Of a stretch of 64,000 nucleotides of DNA, positions 31,632-63,112 are shown piece by piece. Source of the DNA: Octopus sinensis (Eukaryota). Made by a program: the position numbers and the translations under genes. The DNA lies in assembly GCF_006345805.1 (NCBI RefSeq), contig NC_043013.1, forward strand, positions 41,726,001 through 41,790,000. Direction: 5' to 3'. Numbering within the stretch: position 1 is the stretch's first letter; each line of letters begins with the position of its first letter. The notes beneath the pieces were generated by a model, which saw only the letters and a list, made by a program, of their open reading frames with translations, made no database searches and was not told the origin of the DNA.

Positions 31632-31840
31632 ACTGCCTAAATACCAATCTTGAGAAACCAGACATCTCAAAACCAGAAAGGAGAAAGCTGATTCGAAGAC
31701 GACAGATCCAAGCCATCACTGGAACTGCAAAAATCTGTAAAACCTCCCAGACGTTGATCATTTAAGTATATATGAGCATGTCTAGATATACAAGTATATG
31801 CATGAGAAGACAGACAAAACAAAACATACAAATCTGCATG
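31632..31840 (+). mobile_element. 3' end of a (TACA)n-associated RLE LINE family
   Basis: Degenerate CLNTNLEK...LIRRRQIQAITGTAKICKT...II* plus a ~90-bp 3' UTR; homologous to 62712-63112. Confidence 0.8.
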
Positions 31841-32047
31841 TATACATACATAATATATACATATATACATACACACACACACACACACACACACAGACGT
31901 ACATACATACATACATACATACATACATATATACATACATACATACATACATACATACATACATACATATATACATACATACATACATACATACATACAT
32001 ACATACATACATACATACATACATACATACATACATACATACATACA

Positions 32048-32265
32048 TATGTAACACGTTGCCTGAATACCAATCTTGAGAAATTAGGCTTCTCAAAACC
32101 AGAAGGGAGAAAGCTAATCCAAGGACTACAGATACAATCTATCACTAGAACTGTAAAAATCTGTAAAACTTTCCAGAAGTTTATCATTTAAATACTTATG
32201 AGCATGTCTAGATATGCAACTATATGCATGAGAAGACATAAAACAAAACATACAAATCTGTGCAC
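32048..32265 (+). mobile_element. 3' end of the (TACA)n-associated RLE LINE family
   Basis: YVTRCLNTNLEKLGFSKPEGRKLIQGLQIQSITRTVKICKTFQKFII* followed by the same 3' UTR. Confidence 0.85.
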
Positions 32266-33120
32266 ATATATACATACACACCTACATACACACACACACA
32301 CACACACATACACACATACATACACAGATACATACATACATACATAATACATACATACATACATACATACATACATACATGCATACATACATACATATAT
32401 ACATACATACATACATACATGCATACATACATACATACATACATACATACATACATACATACATACATGCATGCATACATACATACATACATACATACAT
32501 ACATACATACATACATGCATACATACATACATATATATACATACATACATACATACATACATACATACATGCATACATACATACATACATACTACATACA
32601 TACATACATGCTACATACATACATACATCATATATACATACATACTACATACATGCATACATACATACATACATACATACATCATATATACATACATACA
32701 TACATACATATACATACATACATATCACATACATACATACATACATACATACATACATACATACATACATACATACATACATACATACATACATACATAC
32801 ATACATACATACATACATACATACATACATACATACATACATACATACATGCATACATACATACATATATACATACATACATACATACATACATACATAC
32901 ATGCATACATACATACATATATACATACATACATACATACATACATACAGGCATACATACATACATATATACATACATACGTACATACAAATATACCCTG
33001 TTAGTATTGTTGAAGTTCCAACAAAGGAGCCTTGAATCTAGGTTAGAAACCAGCTCTTTCTCTATTCCAAGGAATCTTGAAATAAGTCCGAATAATGACA
33101 TACATACAAACAAACATGCA

Positions 33121-33385
33121 TAAATTTGGTTTCGTTAGTAAATGCCTAAGTGATAATCCAGTAAAGCTTCTGTTTTAGGAAAAGAAATTAAAGCAGACAC
33201 ATTAGAATTACAACCTGTTAGCGGAACTGTAAAAATATGCAACACCTTTCTCAGGTTCAAAATGTGAATTTATTTTTGTCATCCATCTTCAAACGATAGA
33301 GCTTTGTATATCTTTTAGAAACCAACTCTTTCCTAACAGAAAGACTTCAAATGATAAAAAGCAGAGTAGAACGTACATAGAATTA
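33121..33385 (+). mobile_element. 3' end of a second subfamily of the (TACA)n-associated LINE
   Basis: ...SGTVKICNTFLRFKM* with its own 3' UTR (TTAGAAACCA...). Homologous to 43670-43925; a UTR-only remnant lies at ~32992-33105. Confidence 0.7.
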
Positions 33386-34479
33386 CACATGCATACATGC
33401 ATACATATATGCGTGCATGGACGCAAGAAAGCACTCATGGATATATAAGTGCATACACACATATACATGCATACATACAGACATACATGCATACACACTT
33501 ACATGCATACACACACATACCTGCACAAGTACATGCATGCATGTATACACTCACATACATACATACATACACACATACATACATGCACACATACATGTAT
33601 GCATGCGTATTTATACATACATACACATGCACATATGCATACACACACGTACATACATACAGGCAAGCACGCATACATATACATACATACGCACACGGAC
33701 GCATGTATGCTTTGCATGCATACATACATGCACATATAAACACACATACATACATACATACGTACATACATGCAAACTTACATATTTACATACATGCATA
33801 CACACATACATACACATATACACACACATATATACATACATATACACCTACATGCATACACGCATATACATGCATACATGCATACATTCATACATAATAC
33901 ATACATATATACACATGTATACATGCACAAATACATACATGTATGCATGCGTATTTGCATATACATACATACACATGCACATATACAAACGCACATACAT
34001 ATATACATACATGCATGCATACATACATGCATGCATACATACATACATATATACATGTATGTATGCATACATATATACATGTATGTATGCATACATACAT
34101 ATATGCATGCATACATACATACATATATACATGCATACATACATATATACATATATGCATACATATATACATGCATGCATACATACATACATGCATACAT
34201 ACATATATGCATATATGCATACATATATACATACACACACACACAAACACACATACATACATACATACATTCATACATACATGCATACATACATACATAC
34301 ATACATACATACATACATACATACATACATACATACATACAGGCTTGGCACGCATGCGTAGTTACATATATGTTGTGATCCAGAACAATCTGAACTAAGG
34401 GAAAAAGTAAAAAATGGTGGTAGAAGTAGGAAAAAAGTAGCGAAATGAAAAAGTAAGGACTTATAAAGTAAAGAGGAAT

Positions 34480-59518: not shown

Positions 59519-60874
59519 TGATTAGTATCATAGAAGGGAGGTGATAACTTTGTATTGACGGTCCGAGATATAATAATGTTTACACTTAGCAAATATTTGA
59601 AATGTCTGTATGGTGTTGAAAACTAGATATACGCAGGTCGTCAAATAATTGTACACGTTAGTAATGAATAGAAAGAAATAAACTAAACGATATATAATTA
59701 CTTCTACCTCCATGCGAAACAGAAGAGAAACGACCACAACTTCTCTCTCGACTAATGAGAAAACCATTGAAGGAAAATGACATGCCACGTAAATGCTAGA
59801 AATAGTAATACGTTTAATAATAGGAAAACTTTTGGCGCTCATTATGCATCAGAAATTTAAAATCGAAGAGCGTTAGTCAGCCATCATGATTAAGAACACC
59901 CTTTCACTGCTGGTCGGTGGAAGGGACTTGTCTGCGAGAGAGAAGAAAATTCTACTGCTCAACAGATATTAGCTACGTCTTAAACAAACAAAACCTCATA
60001 CAGTTCTCGGATGGAAAACACACACATGTACACATACACACACAACCATATATATAAATACATACATATATATATATATACATTTATATGTACATATATA
60101 TATAAATATATATATATATACATATATATATATACACACACACATATTTATATATATATATGTATGTATGTATGTATTTATATAAGAGTAATGCGTTGCG
60201 TCATATGATTTTAAAATATTTATTGCAATTTTTGTAATATAATAGAAAAATATGACGACTCATATATATATTAAATAGCGCAATATTTCAGTATAATATA
60301 TATATATATATATATATATATATATATATATATATATATTATATATATATATATATATATATATATATATATACATACATACATACATACATACATACAT
60401 ATATATATATATATAAACAAAGAGAGATACACATATTATATATATATATATACACGCATATACATACATACATACATACATATATATATGTGTGTGTGTG
60501 TGTGTGTACGTATATGTATGCATATTATGTATGGTTTGTATGTGTAGATATGTGTGTAAGCGCGCACGCACGCACACACATCCGTAGATTTTATCAAATA
60601 TTATTTAGAAAGTCTAACATCCTTATCTTGATGGTATGCGGAAGCTGACTGCGAATGTAGACGCGAGGGCTCTCATCTCAGCCCCACCCAGCTTCAATGG
60701 AATTGGTATATCTTCTAACCTATCATAATATTTTGCATAACTGGTAGTCTGAGAAGTTATTTGGTACCAGCTCAGCCCTGATCGAGTGCACCCATATTCA
60801 AAGTTATGCCAACCGTTATCATCCTGTCTTCTTGGTGTATATCAAGGGCCCTAAGTGATTAATATTTGGAGGAA

Positions 60875-61095
60875 TTAAGGTGGCCAGCTAGCAGAACCGT
60901 TAGCACGTCGGACAAAATGCTAAGCGGCATTTAGTCTGTCTTTACGTTCTGAGTTTAAAATTACATCGAGGTCGACCTCGCCTTTCACTCTTTTGGGGTT
61001 GATAAAATAAGTACCAGTCGAAAACACTGGGATCGATGTAATTGACGTACCCTCGCCCCGAAATTGCTGGCCTTGCGCCAAAATTTTAAATCAAT
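60875..61095 (+). mobile_element. Family B SINE monomer, diverged
   Basis: Head GGTGGCCAGCTAGCAGAACCG; same internal domain as 9594-10168. Confidence 0.78.
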
Positions 61096-62099
61096 ATCTG
61101 GAAGAATTTTGCTGTCATTTCTAGCTGATCGAATGACCATATGGAAGCTTCTTCGTTTTTCCGGCTTCACGGCGATTGTTTTTGCTTCGAACTTTACGCT
61201 ACTTACATATATCTCCAGCTTCACGGCTTTCTAATTATTTTACATATTGATTTGCAAAAAGAACTGCAATCGTGTAATGCAATACAAACTAGTGCCACAC
61301 TGCAGCCTACTGTAAACCATCAGAGGTCGAAGACAAATTTTTAAACCTTGGATTATATAAATAAACGATACACTCTTAAAGACATTCACTTCGTCTCAGA
61401 GCGCGAAGAGCTGGAACGAAGGACGCAAGGCATCCTTGTCGGTGCTCTAATAACTCCGTCAAATTAAATGTAATCGAATGTAATTTAACCAGGAAAGCTC
61501 GTGGACGAATTCAAAATGTTGATTTGGCTTAAGGAGGCGTTTCGATATTTTTCCATTGCCAACAAGCAAGGAACGTAGAGAAAGTTTTATCCTCTTGGCT
61601 ACAAACTAGAAAATGAAAAGTAAAATGAAGTGAAGAAGCAATGTGGTAACACATATTATGGTTCGAAATTGGAAGAAGCTAGTTTGGTAACCAGGTTTCC
61701 ATATTATGTCTTCTCTGGGGAGTGGACAACAAACTGCGAAATAGTCCATCAGGAAACTCCCTCTACTACCATTTTGTCAGCACATCAAAAGCATATAAGG
61801 AATGTTTTCGTCCCTAGTCCACCCACAGCTAGGGTATGTAATATGTAACATATAAATATATGTTATTTTATGTTTTGACTTCTTTCAGTAATTGGAGTGC
61901 GACCATGCTGGAGCATCGCCTTCAAGGGTTTCAGTCGAATAAATCAATCAAAATATTTGTGCTTGAGTTTTATAACTAACACATATTCTATCGGTTTCTT
62001 TCAACGAACTGCTAGGTAATTGGTAGGTAAACAAACCAGCATCGGTTGTCAGGCGTTGAACATAAACACAAACCACACACACACACGAGTAAACATATT

Positions 62100-62711
62100 T
62101 ATATATATATGTGTGTATGTGTTTGTGTCTCGTATACGTAAATACATACATACATACATACACACATACATACATACATACATACATACATACATACATA
62201 CATACACACATACATACATTCATACATACATACATACATACATACATACATACATACATACATACATACATGCATACATACATACATACATACATACATA
62301 CATACATACATATATACATACATACATACATATATACATACATACATACATACATACATACATACACACATACATACATTCATACATACATACAACATAC
62401 ATACATACATACATACATACATACATACATACATACATACATACGTACATACATACATGCCTGCATACATACATACATACATACATACAAACATACATAC
62501 ATACATACATACATACATACATACATACATACATACATACATACATACATACATACATACATACATACATACAAACATACATACATACATACATACATAC
62601 ATACATACATACATACATACATACATACATACATACACACATTCATACATACATACATACATACATACATACATATACATACAAACATACATACATACAT
62701 ACATACATACA
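62100..62711 (+). repeat. (TACA)n microsatellite
   Basis: Direct reading. Confidence 0.97.
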
Positions 62712-63112
62712 ATAGTAATTTGGAATAGAAAAGAGAAACTGTGTACAGTTGTGGAAATCAGCCGCCCAGTGGATGTTAACATAAAGCTGAGGATCAGCGA
62801 AAAAGAAAATACCACGAATTATTAAGAAATCGGCAGTTACTCTATCCAGATTACAGGTTCAGGTTTATACCTGTAATTACTGGGGCACTGGGATATGTAA
62901 CACAGCCTAAATACCAATCTTGAGAAATTAGGCTCCATAAAATCAGAAAGGAGAACGCTAATTCGAAAACTATAAATACAAGCCATCACTGGAACTGTAA
63001 AAATCTGTAAAACTTTCCCGAAGTTTATCATTTAAGTATATATGAGCATGTCTAGATATGCAAGTATATGCATGAGAAGGTATCCATAAAACAGAACATA
63101 CCCATCTGCACA
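62712..63112 (+). mobile_element. Longest copy of the (TACA)n-associated LINE 3' end, including the RLE domain
   Basis: IVIWNRKEKLCTVVEISRPVDVNIKLRISEKENT...FRFIPVITGALGYVT/LNTNLEKLG...TGTVKICKTFPKFII*, with (TACA)n on both sides. Confidence 0.85.

Follow-up and report, generated by a model that had tools for sequence, protein, structure and literature searches.

The stretch considered here is a 64-kb window of Octopus sinensis DNA (contig NC_043013.1, positions 41,726,001 to 41,790,000), which is extremely rich in simple repeats and which carries, on its plus strand, nine fragments of a lineage of long interspersed nuclear elements (LINEs), referred to here as the ACAT lineage. By their sequence, these fragments are dead, 5'-truncated copies that derive from the 3' end of LINEs whose protein carries a restriction-like endonuclease (RLE) at its C-terminus. 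Repeat arrays were located with Tandem Repeats Finder (TRF), and element copies with BLASTN and TBLASTN. A first-pass annotation of the window had reported about nine plus-strand 3' fragments, and all of them were recovered at or near their reported positions: eight are detectable at the protein level, and the ninth (32985-33112) is non-coding. It had also treated them as one family, but they fall into at least two subfamilies, approximately 45-65% identical at the protein level, plus one older copy.

The longest member of subfamily 1 is a 401-bp copy at 62712-63112, preceded by an (ATAC)n array (62134-62711) and followed by (ACAT)n at 63110-63172; all copies and arrays given for this lineage lie on the plus strand. 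It covers the RLE C-terminus from ..IVIWNRKEKLCTVVEISRPVDVNI.. to the stop codon, plus a 3' untranslated region (UTR) designated UTR-A, is interrupted by two frameshifts and stop codons, and shares 64% identity with the predicted protein P0001. No copy of the lineage in the window reaches the reverse transcriptase (RT) region. As a BLASTN query against the window, this copy matched 31632-31838, 32047-32260, 36733-36804, and 44293-44501, all in plus orientation and with 82-85% identity. A 108-aa peptide, obtained by joining its three reading-frame pieces (IVIWNRKEKLCTVVEISRPVDVNI...GALGYVTHCLNTNLEKLGF...GTVKICKTFQKFII), and later the relatives described below, were used for TBLASTN, which added 33124-33372, 43673-43915, and a degenerate stretch at around 34342-34760 (RPDIIAWN...), and which found no minus-strand copy of the lineage in the window. 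The closest protein matches to the fragments are P0003, from Octopus vulgaris (chromosome OX597824.1), and P0004, from Octopus bimaculoides.

The remaining subfamily-1 copies are shorter. The copy at 31632-31838 (approximately 207 bp; 85% identical to the longest copy by BLASTN, TBLASTN E 2e-18, alignment A1) follows a (TACA)n array at 31322-31631, part of a TRF array spanning 31322-32989, and contains the last 45 codons (..CLNTNLEK..GTAKICKT..II and the stop) and UTR-A, terminating in ...AAACATACAAATCTG. The copy at 32047-32260, identified by BLASTN, TBLASTN, and alignment, starts approximately 9 nt farther 5' (ATGTAACACG...). Two more short copies sit in what looks like one duplicated block (35993-36811 and 44026-44370). 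The first, at 36733-36811 (BLASTN, alignment), has its 3' side cut off at 36811 and is separated by an (ACAT)n array (36150-36732) from a minus-oriented short interspersed nuclear element (SINE) named SINE X (35993-36150). The second, at 44293-44501 (BLASTN, TBLASTN, alignment), has the corresponding SINE X (44026-44170) and (ACAT)n array (44170-44292) ahead of it and (CATA)n behind it (44500-44604). As the first-pass annotation had pointed out, four copies (31632, 32048, 44290, and 62712, by their first-pass starts) share the 3' end ...AAACATAC(AA/CC)ATCTG. Subfamily-1 copies are 85-89% identical pairwise in a star-like pattern, and the family is therefore old.

Subfamily 2 is represented by a copy at 33124-33372 (..GFVSKCLSDN..GTVKICNTFLRFKM, a stop codon, and a 3' UTR ending in ...GTAGAAC next to GTACATA; TBLASTN, alignment A2), whose DNA is 74% identical to that encoding P0001 (L002), and by a copy at 43673-43915 (TBLASTN) with the open frame NGALSQWLSD..GTMKICKTYLKFKM, a stop codon, and a 3' UTR ending in ...GAGAAC. 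Between copy 32047 and the first of these lie a (TACA)n array (32261-32984; TRF), possibly the expanded internal tract of a composite element, and the non-coding fragment 32985-33112, designated UTR-B, an approximately 125-bp 3'-terminal piece of a subfamily-2-like element (BLASTN), which ends in ...AATAATGAC directly before ATAC. The older, degenerate copy (..WW..RPDIIAWNYERRKK..LQYPEYAF..) occupies 34342-34760, with an approximate 3' limit, was detected by TBLASTN with the relative P0154 (E 1e-6), and is preceded by a degenerate (CATA)n array at 33452-34341.

The association with the repeat is almost general, in agreement with the earlier claim that nearly all copies lie inside (TACA)n in the same polarity: a (TACA)n-type repeat adjoins eight of the nine fragments in the sense direction, the exception being 43673, and none is in the opposite polarity. 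Perfect ACAT-sense repeat makes up at least 20% of the 200 nt upstream of seven of the eight protein-detectable copies, for which a random site in the window has a probability of 0.10, and 7 of the 18 ACAT-sense array segments terminate exactly at the start of an element copy, while TAA/TTA coverage of these flanks is approximately 0. The tetranucleotide arrays are themselves strand-biased over the whole window, with 18 ACAT-sense segments versus 2 of TGTA on the plus strand, and a perfect-repeat coverage of 6.1% versus 1.2%. Five of the nine fragments are inside one 3.5-kb region. Since the copies cluster in few arrays, the window alone cannot settle the target, and it is the contigs encoding relatives of these fragments that do.

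With P0001, a more intact relative, as the query, exhaustive HMMER searching returned 1910 relatives, and the evidence on flanks and polarity comes from eight separate sources, namely the window and seven outside loci (L001, L004, L005, L006, L009, L010, and L012). One of them is L010, whose protein P0164 is 52% identical to P0154: a complete element of approximately 4.4 kb, in which (CATA)16, the 5' UTR, a 1083-aa open reading frame (ORF), the 3' UTR, and (ACAT)n follow one another, all in sense. In Argonauta hians (L009; BAAFZT010000047.1, 5000-8605; protein P0169), (ACAT)15 stands directly ahead of the 5' UTR, the ORF of approximately 1160 aa contains only two internal stops, and the 3' end reads ...AGAGAC followed by ATACACACACACACATTCATAC (also written ...AGAGAC followed by ATACACACAC), with an ACAY remnant downstream; to judge from this near-intact copy, argonauts may have seen recent activity of the lineage. 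Two further full-length elements from other samples pass directly into (ATAC)n at their 3' ends, L004 after ...CGAAC and L012 after ...CCAGAC. The 3' boundary, (G/A)AC before ATAC, is conserved between distant members. Truncated relatives starting directly after (CATA)n are found in O. vulgaris (L001) and in one large genome (L005 and L006). At L005, the copy following (CATA)n (4300-5040) also bears an internal tandem duplication of approximately 300 bp in the endonuclease-coding part. In several predicted relative proteins, the element is fused to HTYIHTYI, which is (ACAT)n in translation, and CMYV, the translation of the repeat from the opposite strand, appears in none of the relatives' predicted proteins. 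Across the window and the outside loci together, no copy of opposite polarity was found. Rfam matches to mir-297, mir-1277, and mir-3149 on the repeats of L010 (3-76 and 4428-4503) and L004 (3762-3829) were dismissed as low-complexity (ACAT)n artefacts, far below gathering scores.

Full-length relatives are 1083-1162 aa long and are organized as a Pfam RVT_1 domain (found in P0154, P0159, P0043, and P0107), then C-x2-C-x8-H-x4-C, and then RPD...E...PxDxN...K, with C936/C939/H948/C953, P1025-D1026, P1045-x-D1047-x-N1049, and K1057 being invariant in alignment A3. As read from the alignments, this domain order is the R2/R4-type restriction-like endonuclease layout, and it is to the RLE part of these proteins that the octopus fragments align. 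Pfam found neither a zinc finger nor a Myb/SANT domain N-terminal to the RT in the relatives, nor an apurinic/apyrimidinic endonuclease (APE) domain (Exo_endo_phos), the RLE being C-terminal. There is a conserved N-terminal motif (W..L..Y..P.K.GY..RL..LW...HP in alignment A3).

The same window offers a direct comparison, since it holds Dong-like RLE LINEs on its minus strand, identified from ORFs, TRF, and TBLASTN. Two copies, 24985-25940 and 26276-30025, lie head to tail and are flanked in sense by (TAA)n at 25946-26086 and 30044-30171, and a third 3' fragment (40736-41355; TRF, TBLASTN) adjoins a (TAT)n array at 41354-41421. The copy at 26276-30025 is nearly full length, its frame being split into at least three ORFs. 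Against these minus-strand copies, the fragment peptide shows 25-31% identity over the C-terminal endonuclease (E 2e-8). Relatives of the Dong-like C-terminus of the window were found in Acropora, Oculina, Asterias, Clytia, and Penaeus, as unnamed or 'uncharacterized' proteins, and this cnidarian, starfish, and shrimp spread fits the distribution of Dong (PMC7998251). A neighbour-joining tree of 185 C-terminal columns, built without bootstrap values, places all ACAT-flanked sequences (octopus subfamily 1, L003/L004, L006, L009, L010, L012, and P0047) in one large clade, apart both from the clade of Dong-like (TAA) sequences and from another group, formed by P0107, P0118, and P0030. The first-pass annotation was thus right to regard the endonuclease as clearly different from that of the TAA-flanked copies, and the ACAT lineage is not Dong sensu stricto, as the (TAA)n target is absent from its flanks and it does not cluster with Dong-like sequences.

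Which clade it belongs to is less firmly placed. By a published description (PMC7998251), R4/Dong elements combine an RT with a restriction-like endonuclease, lack zinc fingers at the N-terminus, and have a divergent Myb/SANT-like domain there. The architecture of the lineage and its greater similarity to Dong-like elements than to R2 make membership in the R4 clade a reasonable assignment, rather likely to be correct. Compared with the window's Dong-like element, P0154 shows 30% identity in the RT (E 2e-44) and 26-29% in the C-terminus; its similarity to solved R2 structures is confined to the RT (E 3e-28 to 4e-15). However, with 26-30% identity to the TAA-flanked elements and a long separate branch, the lineage could also belong to HERO, to another RLE clade, or to an unnamed sister clade; microsatellite-specific HERO families are cited in PMC4640811 (Repbase Reports 2014), and the repeat annotation of O. 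vulgaris includes both Dong-R4 and Hero families (PMC13282606). We consider such a placement rather unlikely, as the alignment to Dong-like relatives runs collinearly from end to end and takes in the N-terminal motif W..L..Y..GY..RL..W..HP, the absence of detected N-terminal zinc fingers agrees with the R4/Dong description (PMC7998251), and the R2 structures match in the RT domain alone. P0154 is also collinear, over 1143 residues and with this motif, with more distant relatives such as P0107. In hhalign, the N-terminal motif falls on the matching part of the N-terminus of the window's TAA-flanked Dong-like element, albeit weakly (E 0.048, probability 1%).

Taken with these flanks, we consider it highly probable that the fragments are dead copies of an RLE non-LTR retrotransposon lineage with R4/Dong-like architecture, specialized on (ACAT)n microsatellites. 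The lineage is a target-specific RLE LINE with a target other than that of Dong, and it is present well beyond the window. This agrees with the earlier suggestion of a distinct lineage that targets ATAC repeats and regenerates its target, which is favoured by the full-length elements lying between arrays in sense (L010 and L009), by the 3' ends of L004 and L012, by the 5' flanks of L005, L006, and L001, and by the uniform orientation. By analogy with R2 and Dong, the RLE, together with an N-terminal DNA-binding region, would nick the (ATGT)n strand of the repeat. The freed 3' end would anneal to an (AUAC)n stretch at the 3' end of the element RNA (...GAC or ...AAC followed by AUAC) and prime reverse transcription, such that the sense strand of the element would always come to lie on the ACAT strand, with the repeat restored on both sides. 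Reverse transcription would mostly stop early, and the cDNA end would be joined to the upstream repeat at A/C/T-rich microhomologies (ACAC, ATA), giving rise to recurrent 5' breakpoints, such as that of an approximately 210-bp short form. Repeated hits on the same arrays might then place several subfamilies one behind another, as in the region 31.3-34.8 kb.

The repeats could, nevertheless, be a product of the element and not its target: insertion would take place without sequence preference, the RT would make an (ACAT)n tail, for which the I-factor, ending in (TAA)n, provides a model, and the upstream repeats would result from tail expansion and tandem pile-ups. The presence of (ATAC)n at every informative 3' end would be expected, and microsatellites do expand readily, as illustrated by the arrays of the duplicated block (125 bp versus 584 bp). 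Even so, this is very unlikely, as upstream ACAT-sense repeats adjoin the 5' ends of full-length L010 and L009 and of truncated copies with varied breakpoints in eight sources, and a 5' flank derived from a tail needs each element to land behind an earlier tail, which is target specificity in practice. Passive accumulation, by which (TACA)n tracts simply tolerate insertions or were amplified segmentally or in tandem, would account for 36733 and 44290, since each of these LINE fragments forms part of a duplicated block together with SINE X and (ACAT)n, and for the crowding of five fragments in one region. It appears more improbable still: the other copies differ in breakpoints and sequence, with star-like identities of 85-89%, the polarity is uniform, the same association recurs in Argonauta and in unrelated assemblies, and the Dong-like elements of the same window sit in (TAA)n and not in (TACA)n.

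Several observations do weigh against specialization on (ACAT)n. Among the outside loci, those of O. vulgaris (L001) and Argonauta hians (L009) are assigned to octopods, and independent octopus loci amount to about five (four window arrays and L001). No Octopus protein matches P0154 at E ≤ 1e-30, so no catalytically intact octopus copy was found, and Argonauta hians is the sole octopod match. Within the window, only a degenerate ACAT-like run lies upstream of 43673, and the 34342 copy has no ACAT flank at its 3' side. Finally, an element inserted into a repeat is not framed by a target-site duplication, so a pre-existing array and a later-grown, element-made tail are not formally distinguishable.

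The short form is defined by three copies (31632, 36733, and 44290) with the common start ...AC followed by TGCCTAAAT, which the first-pass annotation had explained either by microhomology or by a non-autonomous derivative amplified on its own. The common start is real, but the copies at 36733 and 44290 are not independent, because a minus-oriented SINE X (89% identical between the two) and then an (ACAT)n run stand ahead of each, and their mutual identity is approximately 93%, compared with 82-88% to other copies. An intact parent across the breakpoint is found in O. vulgaris L001, where GGGATATGTAACACAC continues into TGCCTAAATACC (in short, GTAACACAC into TGCC), whereas the short copies are joined as CATAC to TGCC (31632 and 44293) or CATACACAC to TGCC (36733). 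The joint falls on an ACAC run resembling the target repeat. Overlap at ATA or AC is seen in other 5' joints as well: the start of copy 32047 lies 9 nt upstream, where ATA meets TGTAACAC, that of copy 62712 where ACA meets ATAGTA, and the two subfamily-2 copies begin a few codons apart at most, at ATA-rich codons before GALG.

The short form is, thus, probably the outcome of microhomology-guided 5' joining to the repeat, which we favour because two of the three short copies represent one block and the short forms do not cluster. A non-autonomous element amplifying through the LINE machinery and the shared 3' end would explain why three copies share a start base, why all three have G in GCTGATTCG where longer copies have A, and why the approximately 125-bp UTR-B, a second very short unit, has one and the same start in its window and L001 copies. 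Yet the short form has neither head nor promoter and starts inside the ORF, its copies resemble one another (88% identity) no more than they resemble the long ones (85-89%), the breakpoint coincides with ACACAC, a stretch matching the target repeat, and the start of copy 32047, at ATA, is just 9 nt away. With two of its three copies reduced to one block, we regard this derivative as unlikely.

The 3' end of subfamily 1 presents a further complication. The non-coding fragment 32985-33112 matches the 3' end of subfamily-2-like elements, and by BLASTN it is 80% identical to L001 10465-10586 and 77% identical to L007 808-892, each downstream of a subfamily-1 copy. Both in O. vulgaris L001 and in L007/L008, which stem from another sample, UTR-B comes after a subfamily-1 copy, with a short ACAT run in between. 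The alignment of L001 with L007 forms a single block (69% over 454 columns), and their homology ends exactly at ...GAC before ATAC, beyond which the outer flanks differ. The same order exists in the window, where copy 32047 is separated from UTR-B by 724 bp of (TACA)n; the 84 kb of Octopus DNA searched yielded no further copy of UTR-B. In some copies, the ...ATCTG end may hence mark the border of an internal (ACAT)n tract and not the end of the element. It is possible, as a tentative proposal falling somewhat short of an even chance, that the true 3' end of subfamily 1 is UTR-B with an internal (ACAT)n tract, the ...ATCTG ends being derived from internal-tract priming or from inter-tract deletion.

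Other repeats of the window include the tRNA-derived SINE X, which is found in minus orientation in four places (10843-11051, 35993-36150, 44026-44170, and 47653-47803). In three of these four copies, its tRNA-like head adjoins an ACAT-type run on the plus strand; because it is the head and not the tail that does so, the notion that SINE X carries (ACAT)n as its own tail was rejected. Another SINE-like unit forms head-to-tail arrays at 9639-10125 (184 bp x2.6), 42307-42708 (217 bp x1.9), and 48054-48625 (184 bp x3.1, opposite strand). The window also contains an ORF resembling, by eye, a mariner/Tc1-like transposase (45785-46177, plus strand), a LINE C-terminal ORF with a CxxC...H...C motif (443-940, minus strand), an isolated RT fragment with a 30% match to P0154 (54807-55040, plus strand), and an assembly gap of 100 N (15398-15497) within a GGT/GTG-rich simple-repeat region.

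Considered jointly, these elements might represent an old, widespread, and undescribed animal clade of R4/Dong-like RLE LINEs dedicated to (ACAT)n, spread over Octopus, Argonauta, and further organisms, and convergent with Waldo. The octopus members would have a 3' UTR with an internal (ACAT)n tract, with target-primed reverse transcription at UTR-B or internally producing two classes of 3' ends, and the lineage would help to seed and orient the abundant ACAT arrays. We offer this wider picture as a speculative one, with the odds somewhat against it as a whole. Microsatellite-specific LINEs represent a natural retargeting of an RT-endonuclease machine to a short DNA motif, and the pairing of (TAA)n and (ACAT)n lineages in one genome allows a direct comparison for target-reading residues, which is relevant to the R2-type elements under development for site-specific insertion. 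For octopus genomics, such elements explain part of the structure of the ACAT arrays, their interruption pattern, and their strand bias, and in annotation they are better labelled as target-specific than as generic 'Dong-R4' or unknown repeats.

Among the known systems, the closest to the ACAT lineage is Dong, whose hosts include Bombyx mori, Anopheles, Biomphalaria, cnidarians, and ostracods. Both have a single ORF with RT, CCHC, and a C-terminal restriction-like endonuclease, with no N-terminal zinc fingers detected, and both are inserted with fixed polarity in a microsatellite that flanks them on both sides, where 5'-truncated copies pile up, as the Dong-like copies of the window do in (TAA)n. 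They differ in the target, (ACAT)n versus the (TAA)n of Dong (PMC3812793, PMC7998251), and in their clade in the C-terminal tree. An HDV-like (hepatitis delta virus-like) self-cleaving 5' ribozyme, shown for R4 and Dong (PMC3774820), was not detected in ACAT-lineage relatives, but such ribozymes are hard to detect by sequence. Rfam gave no match at E ≤ 1 in L003, L004, or L010, and a crude nested double-pseudoknot descriptor gave fewer hits on the 5' ends of L003, L009, L010, and L012 than on shuffled sequences. A hand-drawn P1 pairing in L003 (GGTAACC with GGTTGCT) was dropped because L010 has no matching covariation.

Target changes within RLE LINE clades are a known theme. R4 itself, from Ascaris and other nematodes, is specific for 28S rDNA, and, compared by description, it resembles the ACAT lineage in its general architecture and site-specific lifestyle, but not in its target, which is an rRNA gene and not a microsatellite. 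Several Dong-R4 families have been reported in O. vulgaris, with no target noted (PMC13282606). The first-pass annotation knew of no ATAC-specific family, and none of the literature searched describes an RLE LINE specific for (ACAT)n, although one may have been catalogued earlier in Repbase Reports or Dfam. A switch of RLE LINEs to simple-repeat targets is documented for Togen, a NeSL-related element of fish that targets (TG)n, and for some microsatellite-specific HERO families (PMC4640811), the difference from the ACAT lineage being the repeat. Nearly the same motif, that of ACAY or ACAT microsatellites, is used by Waldo, of the R1 clade, whose members WaldoAg1/2 and WaldoFs1 target (ACAY)n (PMC3812793). 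Waldo, which is known from insects, is, however, of the APE type, its endonuclease preceding the RT, unlike the ACAT lineage with its C-terminal RLE, so that the two would represent a convergent use of the same repeat.

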